In this document: in pieces, positions 1 to 37,045 of the stretch
How the letters are laid out: each line of letters starts with the position of its first letter
Numbering within the stretch: the stretch's first letter is position 1
DNA from: Octopus bimaculoides
Lineage: Eukaryota
Length of the DNA stretch: 38,342 nucleotides
Direction: 5' to 3'
Assembly: GCF_001194135.2 (NCBI RefSeq)
Contig: NC_068992.1
Location: forward strand, 32,468,703-32,507,044
Program-made: the position numbers and the translations under genes
Notes under the pieces: model-generated
Told to the model about the DNA's origin: nothing
Database searches by the model: none
What the model saw: only the letters and a program-made list of their open reading frames with translations

Positions 1-57
<57 letters not shown>

Positions 58-60
58 CAT
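1..60. repeat. (AT)n microsatellite
   Basis: Pure AT dinucleotide run to about 50, then ACAC/ATAC variants. Confidence 0.97.
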
Positions 61-67
61 ACATAAC

Positions 68-770
68 TATTATTTTAATAATAAAGGGTAATATCAATAA
101 TATTTTTACCCGGTAGCCACTACGGAAATGACAACTTTATAGGAAAGTTTTACAAAATATCTTATAATTATGTACATAATTATTACAAGGGGTCGGCCTT
201 ATGCCTCACCAGGTACCGTAAGAAATAGACACTAAAGTCGTTGTTACTACCCTAAAATCTCCGAGAATGACACACTATTCTAGGCAAGCAAAAGAAAATA
301 ATGAATCAATAAGGCTGATTTACTACGGACGCGTTTCGCACTTAAAATAAAAGATAATTTTACTTACTGTTAATCTTCAGCATAGTATTTCGTATAAGTT
401 TAAGAGTATTTCAAAATATGTACGCGATCAGCAGTATCGTGTGTCCGTTATTTATCTACACTCGTAAAAATATACTGCCGAGTATAATTCATATCTTTCT
501 TCTATGCCCACGAGTGTGTTAAGATCGAGACCGCAGTGAATGCAGTTTCGATAATGGAGTGAATTTGTTCAATTATTTTAATAATAAAAGATAAAATCAA
601 TAATAATTTTACCAGGTAGCCAGTGCGGAAACAAAAACCTCATCAGTAAATTTTACAAAATATTTCACAATTATGTACATAATTATCACAAGGGGTCGGC
701 TTTGTGCCTCACCACGCACCGTAAGAAATAGGCGCTAAAGTCTTTTTTACCTCCTTAAAATATCCGAGAA
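68..770. repeat. Two diverged direct copies of a 200-bp repeat segment (68-267 and 571-770, offset 503 bp)
   Basis: Gapless hand alignment gives 33 mismatches in 200 nt (~83%). Both copies contain the palindromic core AATTATGTACATAATT and AAGGGGTCGG...CCGTAAGAAATAG...TCCGAGAA. Confidence 0.9.
321..387 (-). ncRNA. Minimal type I hammerhead ribozyme motif (GUC site; stem II degenerate)
   Basis: Minus strand reads TACTATG-CTGAAGA-[36 nt]-GAA-ACGCGT-C-CGTAGTA. Stem I is 7 bp, both core blocks are intact, and stem III is the palindrome ACGCGT. Stem II lacks a clean G10.1-C11.1 pair. Confidence 0.7.
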
Positions 771-851
771 ATCTCGGACATTTTAAGGAAGTAAAAAAGA
801 CTTTAGCGTCTATTTCTTACGGTGCGTCGTAAGGCTTAAAACCGACCCCTT
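690..851. repeat. 162-bp fold-back palindrome
   Basis: Arms 690-769 and 772-851 are reverse complements with 8 mismatches in 80 bp, no gaps, and a 2-nt spacer (AA). Confidence 0.95.
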
Positions 852-947
852 CTGGTAGGACAACAATAGAATGAAAGAGACCTCGATATTATGTAAATAG
901 AGGAATGTATCTGTAAATATGATATATGACAATTATTCGGTAGCCAT

Positions 948-11348: not shown

Positions 11349-12627
11349 TCAGGTAATACCATAAGTTCTGTTCGATTTTACCTTTTTTAAAACTGAATGA
11401 AATTCAATAGTATTTTAAAATGTCTTATGGAATTAAAAATTATTTTTATGCATTTGTGTACATTTGAACTAATTAAATATTGTTTTACAGAATAATAGAA
11501 TTATAATTCCTTTGAGTAAACCCTTTCTAACATGAAAGTATCCAAAGAGTATTTGAGGCACATAATGATTGTTGAGTACAAAAAAGGAAACTCTGCATCC
11601 GAAGTGACTCAAACATGCACTCAGTTTATAGGAAAGAATGCTTGAATGAAAGAACTTGCAGAAGATGGTTTGCAAAATTCAGAAGTGGAAGTTTCAGCCT
11701 TGAAAATGAAGATGGAACAGGACGTCCAGTTGAGTTTGATAATAAGATCCTTGATGCATTACTTGAAGAAAACCCTTCATTATCAGTTGCACAATAGGCA
11801 ATAAGGCTTAGTTCAAACAATACAACTGTTCATCGTCATCTTCAACAATTTGGAAAGATTCCTAAACTTGGATAATGGGTGCCTCATGAATTGCCCGAAA
11901 GCAATAGAAAATCCACAGTTGACATCTGCTCTTCTCTCCATTCTCGCAAACTCATTTCACCCTTTTTCGATAGACGTGTGACTGGTGACGAAAACTGGAT
12001 CTTCCATCGAAATGTTAAACGTCGTAAACAGTGGCTTAGTAAAAGGGGAAAAGCTCAACAACAACTGAGAAGGGGACTTCATGAGAAAAGGGTTCTTCTC
12101 TCAATCTGGTGGGATTGCAAAGGAGTAATTCCTTTGAATTGGTACCACCTAATGCAACAATCAATGCACAAGTCACCAATTAGAGCGTTTGAACCAAGCT
12201 TTGAAGAAAAAAAGACGCTCTTTATCGAATCGAAAAGGAGTGACGTTTCATCAGGACAATGCCTGACCCCGAACTGCAATAATCACATCACAGAAAATCG
12301 AAGATCTTGGTTGGAAAAAAAATTTCTCGTCCACCTTATTCACCCGACTTTGCTCCATCAGACTATCATTTTATTTTGTAGTTTACAGAAATATCTGTGG
12401 GACATAACTTTCGCAAGTCTGGAGGAGGTCGAATCTTGCATTTCAGAGTTTTTCGTTTGAAACCAAAAGAGTTTTAAATTTATGGGATTAAAAAGCTTGT
12501 ACATAAGTGGAAGGAAGTCATAGATAATCAGGGAAAGTACATTGATGATTAAATTTCAATTAAATATAGCATTTGATCACTTGTTTTCTTTATCCAAAAT
12601 TCGGACAGAATTTATGGGATGACGTAA
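11349..12627 (+). mobile_element. Full-length mariner (DD34D) DNA transposon, 1279 bp, inactive
   Basis: TIRs of ~31 bp (11349-11379 TCAGGTAATACCATAAGTTCTGTTCGATTTT versus the reverse complement of 12597-12627) match at 24/31. TA flanks both sides (11347-48, 12628-29) and a transposase lies inside. Confidence 0.93.
11532..12552 (+). pseudogene. Mariner transposase pseudogene
   Basis: MKVSKEYLRHIM.., HTH with GRP, WVPHEL, VTGDENW, LSIWWD, HQDNA, and PYSPDFAPSDYH. D34D spacing counted by hand after correcting one frameshift. Ends GKYIDD*. Several in-frame stops and frameshifts. Confidence 0.93.
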
Positions 12628-30520: not shown

Positions 30521-31427
30521 NNNNNNNNNNNNNNNNNNNNNNNNNNNNNNNNNNNNNNNNNNNNNNNNNNNNNNNNNNNNNNNNNNNNNNNNNNNNNNNN
30601 NNNNNNNNNNNNNNNNNNNNNNNNNNNNNNNNNNNNNNNNNNNNNNNNNNNNNNNNNNNNNNNNNNNNNNNNNNNNNNNNNNNNNNNNNNNNNNNNNNNN
30701 NNNNNNNNNNNNNNNNNNNNNNNNNNNNNNNNNNNNNNNNNNNNNNNNNNNNNNNNNNNNNNNNNNNNNNNNNNNNNNNNNNNNNNNNNNNNNNNNNNNN
30801 NNNNNNNNNNNNNNNNNNNNNNNNNNNNNNNNNNNNNNNNNNNNNNNNNNNNNNNNNNNNNNNNNNNNNNNNNNNNNNNNNNNNNNNNNNNNNNNNNNNN
30901 NNNNNNNNNNNNNNNNNNNNNNNNNNNNNNNNNNNNNNNNNNNNNNNNNNNNNNNNNNNNNNNNNNNNNNNNNNNNNNNNNNNNNNNNNNNNNNNNNNNN
31001 NNNNNNNNNNNNNNNNNNNNNNNNNNNNNNNNNNNNNNNNNNNNNNNNNNNNNNNNNNNNNNNNNNNNNNNNNNNNNNNNNNNNNNNNNNNNNNNNNNNN
31101 NNNNNNNNNNNNNNNNNNNNNNNNNNNNNNNNNNNNNNNNNNNNNNNNNNNNNNNNNNNNNNNNNNNNNNNNNNNNNNNNNNNNNNNNNNNNNNNNNNNN
31201 NNNNNNNNNNNNNNNNNNNNNNNNNNNNNNNNNNNNNNNNNNNNNNNNNNNNNNNNNNNNNNNNNNNNNNNNNNNNNNNNNNNNNNNNNNNNNNNNNNNN
31301 NNNNNNNNNNNNNNNNNNNNNNNNNNNNNNNNNNNNNNNNNNNNNNNNNNNNNNNNNNNNNNNNNNNNNNNNNNNNNNNNNNNNNNNNNNNNNNNNNNNN
31401 NNNNNNNNNNNNNNNNNNNNNNNNNNT
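30521..31427. other. Assembly gap (907 N) directly abutting the ~355-bp repeat array
   Basis: N run. Confidence 1.
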
Positions 31428-31643
31428 TATTATTATTTCTATATCTCTCTAAAGGAGGCTGCGGTAGCAGTACTGGGTATCAATAGTTATCGCCAAGCTA
31501 GGGTCCAGAAAAATAGGACGAATGCTGCCGTTTTTTAGCTCCATCACGCCATCGCCTGTAGCTAGCCATGTGACAGACATACCTGTGTCCATTACAATGT
31601 TCGAACATGGGAGGCCATCAACTTCCCCATGCTGGTTCAAATA

Positions 31644-31686
31644 CCCACAAATTAGTTTCAGAGTGTTTGTCCCTTATCAATGCGGA
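31644..31686 (-). ncRNA. Type I hammerhead motif, U3-A8 core variant (diverged copy)
   Basis: TCCGCA-TTGATAA-GGGA CAAACA CTCT-GAA-ACTAAT-T-TGTGGG. Stem I is 6 bp with two G-U pairs; stems II and III are partly decayed. Confidence 0.6.
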
Positions 31687-32094
31687 GTACACGAACCCAG
31701 CAAGCGTAGCTGCTGACTGTCTGTTCGGAGGTTTATAAATAGTCAGTGGAACACTTCCACTGGTTTTCAAAAATAGAAATATTATTATTTCTAAATCTCT
31801 CTAAAGGAGACAACGACAGCAGTACTGGGGAACCTGATTACCTCCTCTGTTCGATCGTTATAAAGGACATATGTTTGTGGAGCCAATCAAGAGAAGCATT
31901 CATCCTATTTGTCTGGACTGCCTCGTTAGCTTGGCGATAACTATTAATGCTCACTACTGCTACAGTAGTCTTCTTTTGAGAGATTTAGAAATAATAATAT
32001 TTATAATTTTGAAAACCATTGGATGTGTTCCACGGACTATATATATAAGCCTTCGAGTAGACAGTCAACAGCGACGCCTGCTGGGTTCGGCTAT

Positions 32095-32137
32095 TCCACG
32101 TTGATAAGGAGCAAATACCCCGAAACTAGTCTGTGGA
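32095..32137 (+). ncRNA. Type I hammerhead motif, U3-A8 core variant
   Basis: TCCACG-TTGATAA-GGAG CAAATA CCCC-GAA-ACTAGT-C-TGTGGA. Stem I is 6 bp, stem II pairs 3 of 4, stem III is the palindrome ACTAGT, and the site is GUC. Confidence 0.75.
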
Positions 32138-32307
32138 TGTTTTAACCACTATGGGGAAGCTGATGACCTCACCTGTTCGAACGTTGTAATGGACACATGT
32201 TTATGTGTCACATAGCTAGCTGTAGGTGATGGCCTTTTGGAGCTAATCAACGGCAGCATTCCTCTTATTTTTCTGGACTGTAATGTTAGTTTGCCGATAA
32301 CTATCAA

Positions 32308-32332
32308 TATATATATATATGTATACACACAC

Positions 32333-32392
<60 letters not shown>
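32308..32392. repeat. (AT)n-(AC)n microsatellite
   Basis: Directly visible. Confidence 0.95.
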
Positions 32393-32393
<1 letters not shown>

Positions 32394-32904
32394 TTATATG
32401 TAGTAATACTTGTTGCCACTTCAGCATGGCCCTTCCGTAGGTTGCTACGATACTAAAATCTCTATTTACACTTCCACACACACAAACTGATGCACACGCA
32501 CACAATCATACACGTATATAAAATACTACACGTATTTGCAAACATTTCGTGATCGTTACTTTCAAATTATGGAAGTCGTTTCCCTTCATACGATTTACTT
32601 CAAAAACTGTCCAACCGTGAATCTACGTCATGGCTGTAGTTGTTCTGTATATTTTCCATTTCGTTGTGCTTATTTGTGTGTTGTATCTGTCTCATAATTG
32701 TCGACATTTTTTTTTTACATTCATAAATTTTGATAAATTTGCGTGCATCACAATATTTATGGGATTCTTTATTATCATTAGTGTGACATGAACAGTTATT
32801 TTGAGGTGTATTGCTCCCACAGTATAGACTGATGATACGTAAGCTTGATTTCATTTTTCCTTTTCAGGCATTTAGAATCATACATAATTTTTTTTATATC
32901 CCCC

Positions 32905-33480
32905 GCAGGTAGTGAAGCGTCAGAAGAAAGGTAATGAAAAGCCAGAAGAGAAAACCCGCAAGAACAGCCAGGCAGCTTATATGAGAGAATACAGAGCGCG
33001 ACTGAGTAATGACGGAGCAGCGCAGTGACGAGAACAGCAAGCACGAGTTAGTAGACTGCGATGCTCAGAGGAAAGCTAAGATAAATCTGAAAGAAGAAGG
33101 TGACATGAATACACTGATACAGAAGATTGAATAATGCTGCTCAAAGGAACAAAAGAGAAAATTAGAAGAGGTTAGGCAGAGATCTTTACGGGATTAGATG
33201 TAGAAGGAAATATTAGGAAGTCTAGAACAAATCATGGTTCGGCATACGACTATGTAACTGAGTAAGGCAGAAAGTGAAAGAATGCTAATAGAAATACGAC
33301 ATAGGGCAGTTCAAAGAAAAGTTAATGAAACTGACAAAGAAAAGGGAGAGATATTACATGATATAAGCCATGCAATTGAAACATTGTGCAAAAGATATTT
33401 AGAAGGAAGGATGAGAGAATACGCGTTGAAGAACGATTAGAGAAGGAAAGTAATGATAGAAACATAAGAAATCAGTGAAA
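32905..33480 (+). mobile_element. Possible decayed Helitron Rep/Hel N-terminal charged-repeat region
   Basis: Purine-rich. Translates to R/E/Q-rich segments (EEKTRKNSQAAYMREYRARLS..REQQARVSRLR) broken by stops, preceded by splice-like acceptors TTTTCAG and CCCCGCAG. Confidence 0.35.
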
Positions 33481-33919
33481 ACCAAAAAGCTATGAATGAA
33501 CCAGACATGATTATGTGATACAAATGAACAACATATCTTTCTATTAAGAGTAATGTAATCAAAGCTGTATATTATTGGGTAAAAGTAAGGTACCTGTTAT
33601 TTTTTCGCTTCTATTTACACACTAAAAAGAAAAAAGAAATACTCATTAGCATCATTCATAGTGTATATCTTTCAACAAAACCACCAAATTGAAAAAACAA
33701 ATATTAATAAATACGAGCCAAATTTTGCAATTATCAGAAAGTTTATTGAAACACCTGCTGTCAGATCTGACGGCAAGAAAACTTTAGAAAATGTGCATTT
33801 ATATAAAACTGTCTCTGTGTGAATATGTGCGTGTGTAACTGTGCATGTGTGCATTCGATATTAGCGATGAAAGAAGTATTTGCTCAGAACATCAGTTTGT
33901 ATATCACACTGCTAAGAGT

Positions 33920-35109: not shown

Positions 35110-37045
35110 AACACACTTCATATGTTCGATATGCCGATCACGAGATTCACTTTAAATACATCATCAAGGTATGGAATTGCAAACTGACAGTCCGCCAACA
35201 TCACATCCATAACCAGTTGAAATATTGCAAGCTTCTGACCAAATGGCAATCTATTATATTTGTACAATCATCTGTGCGTATCACTATTAGAAGCTTCGAG
35301 CATTTCTCGTCTACTTTCCTTTGTAGATACGCATCTGACATCCAAATTCGAAAATATTTTGCTACCGTTTAATTGTGCAAAAATATCTTCCGGTGTTGGC
35401 AGTAGGTAGTGGCACATTTTAGACAGTCGCACGAACCTGTAGAAAAGTTGGTACACACTCTGATGTTATTTTCTTCTATACACACAGTTGGTGCTGACCA
35501 TTAACAATAAGTTATCTTTTGAATTATTCGTAATTTCTCGAGACTATCTAATTCTTATACCTGCTTTATCCCAGCAGATGGTACTTTTCTCTTAAGGTTT
35601 GAACACAGGTACGATGTTTTCCTTTATTTGAAAACTGGTCTCAGTTTTAGAACATAGACCTAATTTATCCACAGCACTTCAGGGAACAAGTAATTTAATT
35701 TTTTCTTCAATTCAGCTACTGAGTTATTTTTTACTGGTAAGACTGCTATTTACATTTTCACCGAACATATTTATAGGGTCTGTCCCAAAAGCCAAATAAT
35801 TCCAAACAATCCTTACCGAACAGACCGGTTGCCTTTTGTACCACGGAATCTTTTACTCTACATGTTTTCACTGAAATGTCGCATCACTCAATATTTCGAT
35901 TACAAACTGTAATTTTACACCTCTCACACCTCGTGTAATTTTTGATGTTTTTCTTAAAGTAGGTTTCCCAATTCTTATCCGTTTCTTTATTAATAATCCA
36001 GGTGTCTCTATCAGTGTCTAGTTGCAATTTATTATTCACTTCGTTTACTTTTATATGTACAATTTCCCTCTTTTTTGTGTCACTTCTACTTACCGTTGAG
36101 AAAGCTTTAGAATTTTTTATGTTCGACCTTCTTAACTTTGCTCTGCAATGTGAGCTCTTGTGTCCTAATTTTTGGCAACTTGAAGAGTTTTGCGTTTTAC
36201 AAAGACAATGCATCCTGAAATGTAGCGTGAATTTGGTCCTCACATTTGTTTTTGTTTATACCTTCCCAGTGGGTACGCTTGTAGTTGCGAGAACTCCTTT
36301 TCAATTCTTTTACATCTGAGGTAAATTATTTGAAACTCCTCTGCAACTGTACGCAATGTTAAACTTTACTCCGCTTGTTCAAGTTTTGTGAGAATTGTTG
36401 CACGTTTCTCCGCATCTTTGTTTGACGTATACTCTTGTACAACAATAAGGCGCTGAAACGTATCAGGAGTTAGTTCCTTCAGTTTAAACCTTTTGCACAT
36501 TTGGTTTACTGTTCTGGCATATGTATCAAAATCATTTTCTGTTTAGTTATATTCCAACACTCCCATCAAGAGGTAAATATGAAACACTTATCACTGAATA
36601 TTTTTGATAGTAGCTCAACTACTTCCTGGAAACAAATCTCACCAGTTGTTTTTGGGAAGTTATGAAATTATTCAAAAATAATCGTTCCTGTTCGTTGTCT
36701 GTCCACGACTTGCAATCTTCCCTGAAGATTTCTTCGTACCTTCTAAAGAACGCTGCAAACGTTATACTCTCCTCTGGGTCATAACTGAATTCTGTTATAG
36801 AGTTCGATACGCCGTCTGGCGAAAACGAACTTATAGTGTTTCCGGACTTCTTAAGACATGGCTCCATCGACTGTTGTTGGCTTTCTTGTTTCTGAAGTAA
36901 TCCTTTCTGCAAATCTTGTTGCTCATATTGATGCTGCTTATACAATTTTATTACAGAAGCTGATAGGTCCTTCATCATTAACAAATTGGTATCACAAAAA
37001 TATGTTAAGTAACCTGCGCGAGCTTCAAATTCTCGATGCCAGTAT
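35110..37045 (-). mobile_element. Ty3/Gypsy LTR retrotransposon internal region (gag-protease-RT), 3'-truncated and decayed
   Basis: Gag: SITEFSYDPEESITFAAFFRRYEEIF. Zn knuckle remnant: SSSCQKLGHKSSHC. Protease: LQLDTDRD. RT: YLPTPEDIFAQLNGSKIFSNLD, YNRLPFG, and YLDD at 35160-35171. Many stops and frameshifts. Confidence 0.92.
37032..37041 (-). promoter_or_regulatory. Putative primer-binding site of the Gypsy element
   Basis: TGGCATCGAG lies 4 nt inside the candidate LTR end; TGG complements the tRNA CCA. Confidence 0.6.

Follow-up and report, generated by a model that had tools for sequence, protein, structure and literature searches.

Inverted hammerhead-bearing repeat units with a shared U3-A8 core beside a microsatellite: a probable relic of a retrozyme-like insertion

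Retrozymes are tandem, low-GC repeats of 150–450 bp that carry type I hammerhead ribozymes and are probably mobilised by Penelope-like elements. Multimeric transcripts of metazoan retrozymes self-cleave, and do so as dimers when helix III consists of a single pair and a palindromic tetraloop; a host ligase then closes the monomers into circles, from which Penelope-like reverse transcriptases are believed to make tandem cDNA. Hammerheads of the HHR_Amex1 type cleave efficiently only as dimers (PMC7229834), and the giant squid genome contains 235 Rfam type I hammerhead loci (PMC6962438). Penelope-like insertions show a bias toward microsatellites and take the form of partial tandems with an adjacent inverted, 5′-truncated copy (PMC8557442), while the minimal hammerheads of animal Penelope pseudo-LTRs (pLTRs) have a helix II of 6–8 bp, a helix I of 4–5 bp, and an unpaired base between A9 and position 10.1 (PMC4209133).

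The locus described here lies in a 38,342-nt window (i.e., the whole stretch of Octopus bimaculoides DNA that was analysed), where repeat analysis and blastn identified four related pieces flanked by an assembly gap and a microsatellite (Table 1). With a probability of roughly two in three, we take it to be the decaying remains of an old insertion, left by a non-autonomous retroelement that carried a hammerhead and belonged with the metazoan non-LTR retrozymes or Penelope-associated elements. The pieces form two mutually inverted arms of 1.1 and 1.4 units; in ribozyme polarity, the 5′-truncated ends of both arms meet centrally with a TGGG overlap, and the arms run outward, the right one to the microsatellite and the left one to the gap. 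A single tandem array of 352–360-bp monomers, two of them complete, had been claimed in the original prediction. Spacings of 352 and 360 nt do exist, but tandem order is confined to each short arm, the locus consisting instead of two short head-to-tail arrays joined head-to-head; TRF reported no period of ~355 nt, only c1 is complete, and the gap, previously given as 907 N, is one base shorter.

Table 1. Positions of the features discussed in the text, in window coordinates.
Feature	Position	Strand	Remarks
(AT)n/(ACAT)n tract	1–68		directly precedes second repeat
Second repeat	69–857		unrelated to units c1–c4
Second repeat, unit	69–571		503 nt
Second repeat, hammerhead-like motif	322–386	−	ACUAUG CUGAAGA (36 nt, AU-rich) GAAAC GC GUC CGUAGU
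Second repeat, partial unit	572–770		199 nt; 84% identity
Second repeat, inverted arm	772–857		88% complementary to 684–769; 2-nt spacer
Mariner-type ORF	11879–12460	+	193 aa, partial transposase
Assembly gap	30521–31426		906 N; conceals outer, RNA-3′ end of left arm
Four related pieces	31428–32309		units c1, c2p, c3p and c4
Unit c1	31428–31779	−	only complete monomer, 352 nt; ribozyme polarity is minus strand; GC 44%
Hammerhead-like motif, c1	31644–31686	−	UCCGCA UUGAUAA GGGA CAAACA CUCU GAAAC UA AUU UGUGGG; predicted cleavage between 31650 and 31649
Head-to-tail junction, left arm	31779/31780		
Unit c2p	31780–31829	−	final 50 nt of monomer, head-to-tail with c1; 88% to c1
TGGG microhomology	31826–31829		head-to-head junction; read from sequence and unit alignments
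Unit c3p	31826–31999	+	3′ ~208 nt of monomer minus 34-nt internal deletion, i.e., 174 nt
Head-to-tail junction, right arm	31999/32000		
Unit c4	32000–32309	+	monomer positions 1 to ~305; 310 nt; head-to-tail with c3p
Hammerhead-like motif, c4	32095–32137	+	UCCACG UUGAUAA GGAG CAAAUA CCCC GAAAC UA GUC UGUGGA; predicted cleavage between 32131 and 32132
(AT)n(AC)n microsatellite	32307–32393		abuts RNA-3′ end of right arm
Lysine/glutamate-rich frame	32900–33500	+	stop-interrupted; KRQKKGNEKPEEKTRKNSQAAYMREYRARL...
Two DUF-matching ORFs	35884–36984	−	

All units are 80–88% identical pairwise with similar counts of private changes, i.e., their divergence is star-like. Between the arms we counted 288 identities, 37 transitions, and 27 transversions; this difference of 18% means that the arms are not the same reads assembled twice. 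The GC content of the repeat unit is 42–44%, as compared to 34% for the window. The monomer is non-coding, as originally claimed: ORFs in the repeat region reach at most 77 aa and yielded no Pfam match and no homologue, and no tRNA-like part was found in the unit. A blastn search found no further copies in the window, and a search for family copies through the proteins of spurious ORFs also found none. Each strand of the assembled sequence has one ribozyme, with no second one on the same strand, and the assembled locus is thus unable to release a monomer; no excisable monomer is visible in it, and the gap could conceal a second minus-strand ribozyme. The head-to-head arms also constitute a long imperfect hairpin, and a transcript running through both of them would contain a duplex of ~240 nt.

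Two hammerheads had been predicted, one per strand, and both were found at those places, in c1 and c4. These are the only two of the four units that cover the ribozyme segment; in the unit alignments c3p stops short of it, and c4 is truncated at the start of the microsatellite. Both copies have the type I layout, with an open 6-bp helix I, a 7-nt core, a closed 4-bp helix II, loop 2, GAAAC, and a tiny helix III. The invariant core nucleotides U4, G5, A6, A9, G12, A13, and A14 and the A15.1-U16.1 pair are present in both, and H17 is G in neither (C in c4, U in c1); the canonical C3 and G8 are absent, and the core reads UUGAUAA directly in each copy, with U3 and A8, as had been noted. Helix I is paired at 6/6 positions in both, its three differences being one-sided transitions that keep pairing via G-U, in line with the earlier statement that stem I stays paired despite substitutions; there are no double compensatory changes between the two copies. 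Helix II is 3/4 paired in each, with one A×C mismatch: c4 has the G10.1-C11.1 pair, and two of the pairs in c1 (including 10.1-11.1) are G-U. One mismatch per copy is consistent with the GGGG/CCCC stem II ancestor that had been proposed. Unit c4 also has a GUC triplet and a palindromic helix III (ACUAGU), and helix III of c1 (ACUAAU) contains a C×A mismatch. Loop 2 is CAAAUA in c4, which is also the Rfam consensus, and CAAACA in c1; the nucleotides 5′ of helix I are CUAU in c4 and GUAC in c1, and the stem that closes off the internal loop of helix I (GUUCG/UGAAC) is kept in c1 only. Loop 2 and that internal loop are the elements with which type I hammerheads make their loop-loop tertiary contact. 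A canonical CTGATGA at 32160–32166 in c4 is absent from c1 and c3p, has no surrounding helices, and was set aside as chance.

A strict descriptor (helix I paired at 6/6 positions, a C3-G8 or U3-A8 core, a 4-bp helix II with ≤1 mismatch, GAAA, a short helix III, and UH) matched only c4 in the window, with a chance expectation of 3.3e-4 per window-sized random sequence; when loop 2 CAAAYA was added, it matched 0/3000 random sequences. The Rfam hammerhead models gave no match at the gathering score or at E ≤ 10, even with 75-nt slices, which bears out the expectation that standard searches miss the motif; as evidence against homology this negative is weak, because canonical type I hammerheads from metagenomes reach only 26–35 bits against the 34-bit Rfam gathering threshold. 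We also built a covariance model (CM) from the Rfam consensus, four Rfam-validated metagenome hammerheads, and N79; since the pattern that fetched the metagenome sequences came from the candidate itself, the independent references are the Rfam consensus and N79. This canonical-hammerhead CM placed c4 at the top of the window (28.7 bits, E ~4e-8 under a rough calibration) and c1 third (9.4 bits, E ~0.7). The segment lengths of the RF00163 consensus (aUccag CUGAcGA GUCC CAAAUA GGAC GAAAC GcgC GUC cuggAu) match those of the window motif throughout, and CUAY lies 5′ of helix I in 5/6 canonical metagenome hammerheads, likewise in c4. Judged by its sequence, the motif is genuinely related to the canonical type I hammerhead of animals.

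The metagenome pattern scan found no relatives of the unit, only unrelated loci. The canonical hammerheads among them (L001, L009, L014, L016, L022, and L023) have loop 2 CAAAUA, CUAY, and a palindromic AGCU or GCGC helix III, and several of these loci share one sample, ERZ1740055. One locus (L016) contains two hammerheads on opposite strands, ~1.8 kb apart, and another (L007) has a hammerhead copy with a C3-A8 mismatch.

Substitutions within the 43-nt motif amount to 10 differences between the copies, all of them transitions (hypergeometric p = 0.002, post hoc); the unit outside the motif has 27 transitions and 27 transversions. None of the 10 differences falls in the 11 core nucleotides (p = 0.03, a value biased by how the motif was found). 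The all-transition pattern may be accidental, or it may reflect RNA-level constraint or editing. The ribozyme shows no excess of conservation after the split (77% identity inside the ribozyme vs. 82% across the whole unit). Measured against the best-of-two ancestor, three of the eight substitutions in the helices disrupt pairing, a rate that is as expected of neutral transitions; covariation statistics are not meaningful with n = 2 sequences, and counts are given instead. The nominal hammerhead fold has an energy of +0.6 kcal/mol in c4, +2.7 kcal/mol in c1, and −6.3 kcal/mol in the best-of-two ancestor. Self-pairing of the helix III palindrome comes to −6.2 kcal/mol for c4 and +1.2 kcal/mol for c1, which is thus unable to self-pair; a 63-nt fold that includes the closing stem gives z = −2.1 for c1 and +1.1 for c4, and the fold of the c1 monomer RNA is somewhat more stable than those of shuffled sequences (z = −2.4). 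Each copy thus looks to have kept different parts of an apparently fully canonical ancestor with U3-A8, both having drifted since; the c4 ribozyme is predicted to have perhaps retained a weak, dimer-dependent activity, and the c1 ribozyme is predicted to be probably dead.

C3 and G8 form a tertiary Watson-Crick pair of the hammerhead core. The U3-A8 combination is an isosteric replacement of C3-G8 known in natural hammerheads, and natural U3-A8 covariation has been described in Schistosoma Penelope-like elements, with ~1,300 matches (PMC4209133). Because the double change is common to both copies, U3-A8 would have been present in their common source, and comparison of the copies indicates that it was already in the source RNA of the local units. 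The original prediction had declared it ancestral to the family; what the copies support is narrower, namely ancestry in a single common source of four star-like local units rather than genome-wide, since only these local units were seen. We put the odds that U3-A8 is a putative selected, active variant at about even. That the source genome has a live or recently live retrozyme family, with a tertiary-stabilised type I hammerhead working with U3-A8, we consider doubtful.

The competing account that survives best accepts the same element but takes U3-A8 as plain decay of a canonical C3-G8 ribozyme by two independent GC-to-AT transitions, with the dead copy later duplicated and inverted locally, so that a functional U3-A8 ribozyme never existed here; we give it somewhat less than an even chance. 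In DNA of 66% AT, as here, C-to-U and G-to-A are the most frequent class of mutation, and the later substitutions in helix II, helix III, and H17 are transitions that fit GC-to-AT decay from the best-of-two ancestor, yet that inferred ancestor is, positions 3 and 8 aside, an intact hammerhead without shared helix defects. Two to three random GC-to-AT changes on ~22 G/C sites would strike exactly C3 and G8, the sole covarying pair of the core, with p = 0.004–0.013, and natural families of U3-A8 hammerheads exist (PMC4209133); on the side of decay, the ribozyme is without sign of selection since the copies split, and the six metagenome matches with a paired helix II are all C3-G8 (0 U3-A8). Canonical-type U3-A8 ribozymes seem to be rare.

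Under the preferred reading of an old insertion, a series of steps known from the family can be proposed for the live element. Neighbouring ribozymes of its multimeric transcripts would have folded as a double hammerhead via the palindrome and cleaved after GUC; the monomers would have been circularised by a host RNA ligase, and a nick in a (TA)n target would have primed a Penelope-like reverse transcriptase to copy the circles. At this locus, the insertion was probably targeted to the (AT)n(AC)n microsatellite, and reverse transcription would have begun in the (AT)n tract at 32307, at the end of the right arm. Copying would then have gone beyond one unit on a template that was circular or multimeric, and the 5′ end would have been resolved by a second priming or a template switch at the TGGG microhomology, giving two head-to-head, 5′-truncated arms; the four units would have been near-identical at insertion, followed by ~9–10% drift each. 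The evidence base consists of two ribozyme copies, both local, with no dispersed family seen in the window. Of the retrozyme assignment made earlier, the ~352-nt, non-coding unit of ~43% GC with a type I hammerhead stood, but the inverted partial arrays and the lack of a strand with two ribozymes did not conform to it.

Alternatively, the locus may not be a separate non-autonomous retrozyme but a fragment of a Penelope-like element's own pseudo-LTR (a solo or partial pLTR), a reading that we regard as unlikely. The design of a partial tandem with an inverted, 5′-truncated copy and a microsatellite target is that of Penelope-like insertions (PMC8557442), and dual ribozymes on opposite strands, 100–700 bp apart, are known for truncated elements (PMC4209133). 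The ribozyme, however, is canonical (a 6-bp helix I, a 4-bp helix II, and a conserved loop 2) rather than of the minimal pLTR type, and the unit repeats head-to-tail every 352 nt without an ORF. No reverse transcriptase (RT) or GIY-YIG domain was found in the eight window ORFs scanned with Pfam, a limited scan that heavily decayed ORFs could escape; the eight ORFs contained only a mariner transposase fragment and DUF7083 and DUF7193 domains.

Immediately to the right of the (AT)n/(ACAT)n tract at the left end of the window lies a second, unrelated repeat, which consists of a unit, a partial unit, and an inverted arm (Table 1). It holds the second-best match of the CM in the window (13.2 bits, E ~0.03), a motif in which the core boxes are canonical, all six pairs of helix I form, and helix III is palindromic, but a proper helix II beside the core is missing. 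This repeat may be a decayed Penelope-type hammerhead element. The occurrence of the same design twice beside (AT)n in the window supports a recurrent insertion mechanism and stands against the explanation that the main locus began as an ordinary satellite or segmental repeat and was rearranged as DNA (by fold-back or template-switch inversion), with a fossil ribozyme and no RNA-mediated insertion. The inverted structure could also arise at the DNA level, as replication errors also yield microhomology junctions and inverted duplications, and a single locus of the unit is visible in the window; the units, however, are star-like and equally diverged, and one arm terminates in a microsatellite. 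We consider this explanation improbable, at slightly longer odds than a pLTR fragment. A chance resemblance to hammerheads, or an assembly artefact beside the gap, is very improbable, for although Rfam gave no match and the locus adjoins 906 N, the descriptor expectation is 3e-4 per window even before loop 2 and the 5′ UAY element are counted, and the CM supports c4 at E ~4e-8.

Several other identities were considered for the repeat unit and rejected. A protease-like frame (..VMDTGMS..) is partly kept between copies, and both Pfam at E ≤ 10 and a search of 5.8 billion proteins were empty for a coding origin. GGTTCG-like boxes had raised the possibility of a tRNA-derived SINE; ARAGORN and Rfam found no tRNA. 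Rfam matches to MIR821, bicoid_3, and MIR4414 are far below the gathering score and arise because the arms form a long inverted repeat, i.e., an imperfect hairpin; no other ribozyme class was found in Rfam at E ≤ 10 on either strand.

Other traces of mobile elements occur elsewhere in the window. The mariner-type ORF encodes part of a transposase (Pfam Transposase_1, E = 7e-11) and is a decayed DNA-transposon copy; it had no match at E ≤ 1e-10 in a large protein collection. Two minus-strand ORFs near the right end match Pfam DUF7083 (E = 6e-11) and DUF7193 (E = 0.007, below the cut-off), the first of them also having a CCHC-like zinc-knuckle sequence; the region resembles the gag end of an LTR retrotransposon in decay. 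A lysine/glutamate-rich frame lies just right of the microsatellite (Table 1).

The main locus preserves, in decayed form, a mobile element of an already described class rather than a new one, and its novelty is modest because natural U3-A8 hammerheads have been known since 2014 (PMC4209133). If U3-A8 were family-wide and active, it would extend the natural 3/8 covariation, known so far from minimal Penelope-type ribozymes, as a first U3-A8 in a canonical animal ribozyme, and would prove the C3-G8 pair by natural covariation in ribozymes other than those of the minimal Penelope type; surveys based on CUGANGA or Rfam would then systematically undercount hammerheads and retrozymes in this lineage. 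The locus is of value as a seed sequence for a genome-wide search and as a clean example of a head-to-head, microsatellite-anchored insertion, seen twice in the window, that ties retrozyme-like repeats to Penelope-type integration.

Among known systems, the Schistosoma mansoni Cercyon Penelope-like hammerheads (Cervera & de la Pena 2014; PMC4209133) share U3-A8 and a palindromic 15.2-16.2 with the locus, occur mostly as single or opposite-strand motifs, and are likewise linked to Penelope-type insertion; they are, however, minimal, in that helix II is long, helix I is short, and a loop-loop motif is lacking, whereas the motif at the locus is canonical and tertiary-stabilised. Its helix II of 4 bp, helix I of 6 bp, and lack of an extra base also set it apart from the minimal pLTR architecture in general (PMC4209133). 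With RF00163 (clan CL00010) and Schistosoma Sm1 (N79) it has in common the helix lengths, spacing, loop 2 CAAAUA, GAAAC, and GUC, as well as similar helix I letters (UCCA.G /.UGGA) and UAC/UAU 5′ of helix I; the Sm1-derived N79 (PMC12550524) has GUAC directly 5′ of helix I, as in c1. It differs from RF00163 and Sm1 in having U3 and A8, a helix II mismatch in each copy, and a score under every Rfam reporting threshold. The absence of an RT/GIY-YIG ORF and a unit far shorter than a full element distinguish the locus from Penelope-like insertions (Craig et al. 2021; PMC8557442), which it resembles in the partial tandem, the inverted 5′-truncated copy, and the (TA)n neighbour. From metazoan non-LTR retrozymes (Cervera & de la Pena 2020; PMC7229834) it differs in its 1.1 and 1.4 inverted units, its one ribozyme per strand, U3-A8, and decayed helices. 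It shares with them a non-coding, low-GC unit of a few hundred nucleotides (GC 42–44%, as compared to <45–50% for metazoan retrozymes, and no LTR, PBS, or PPT), head-to-tail junctions, one canonical type I hammerhead per unit and, with the axolotl/newt HHR_Amex1 type, a helix III made of a single A-U pair and a palindromic tetraloop, here CUAG.
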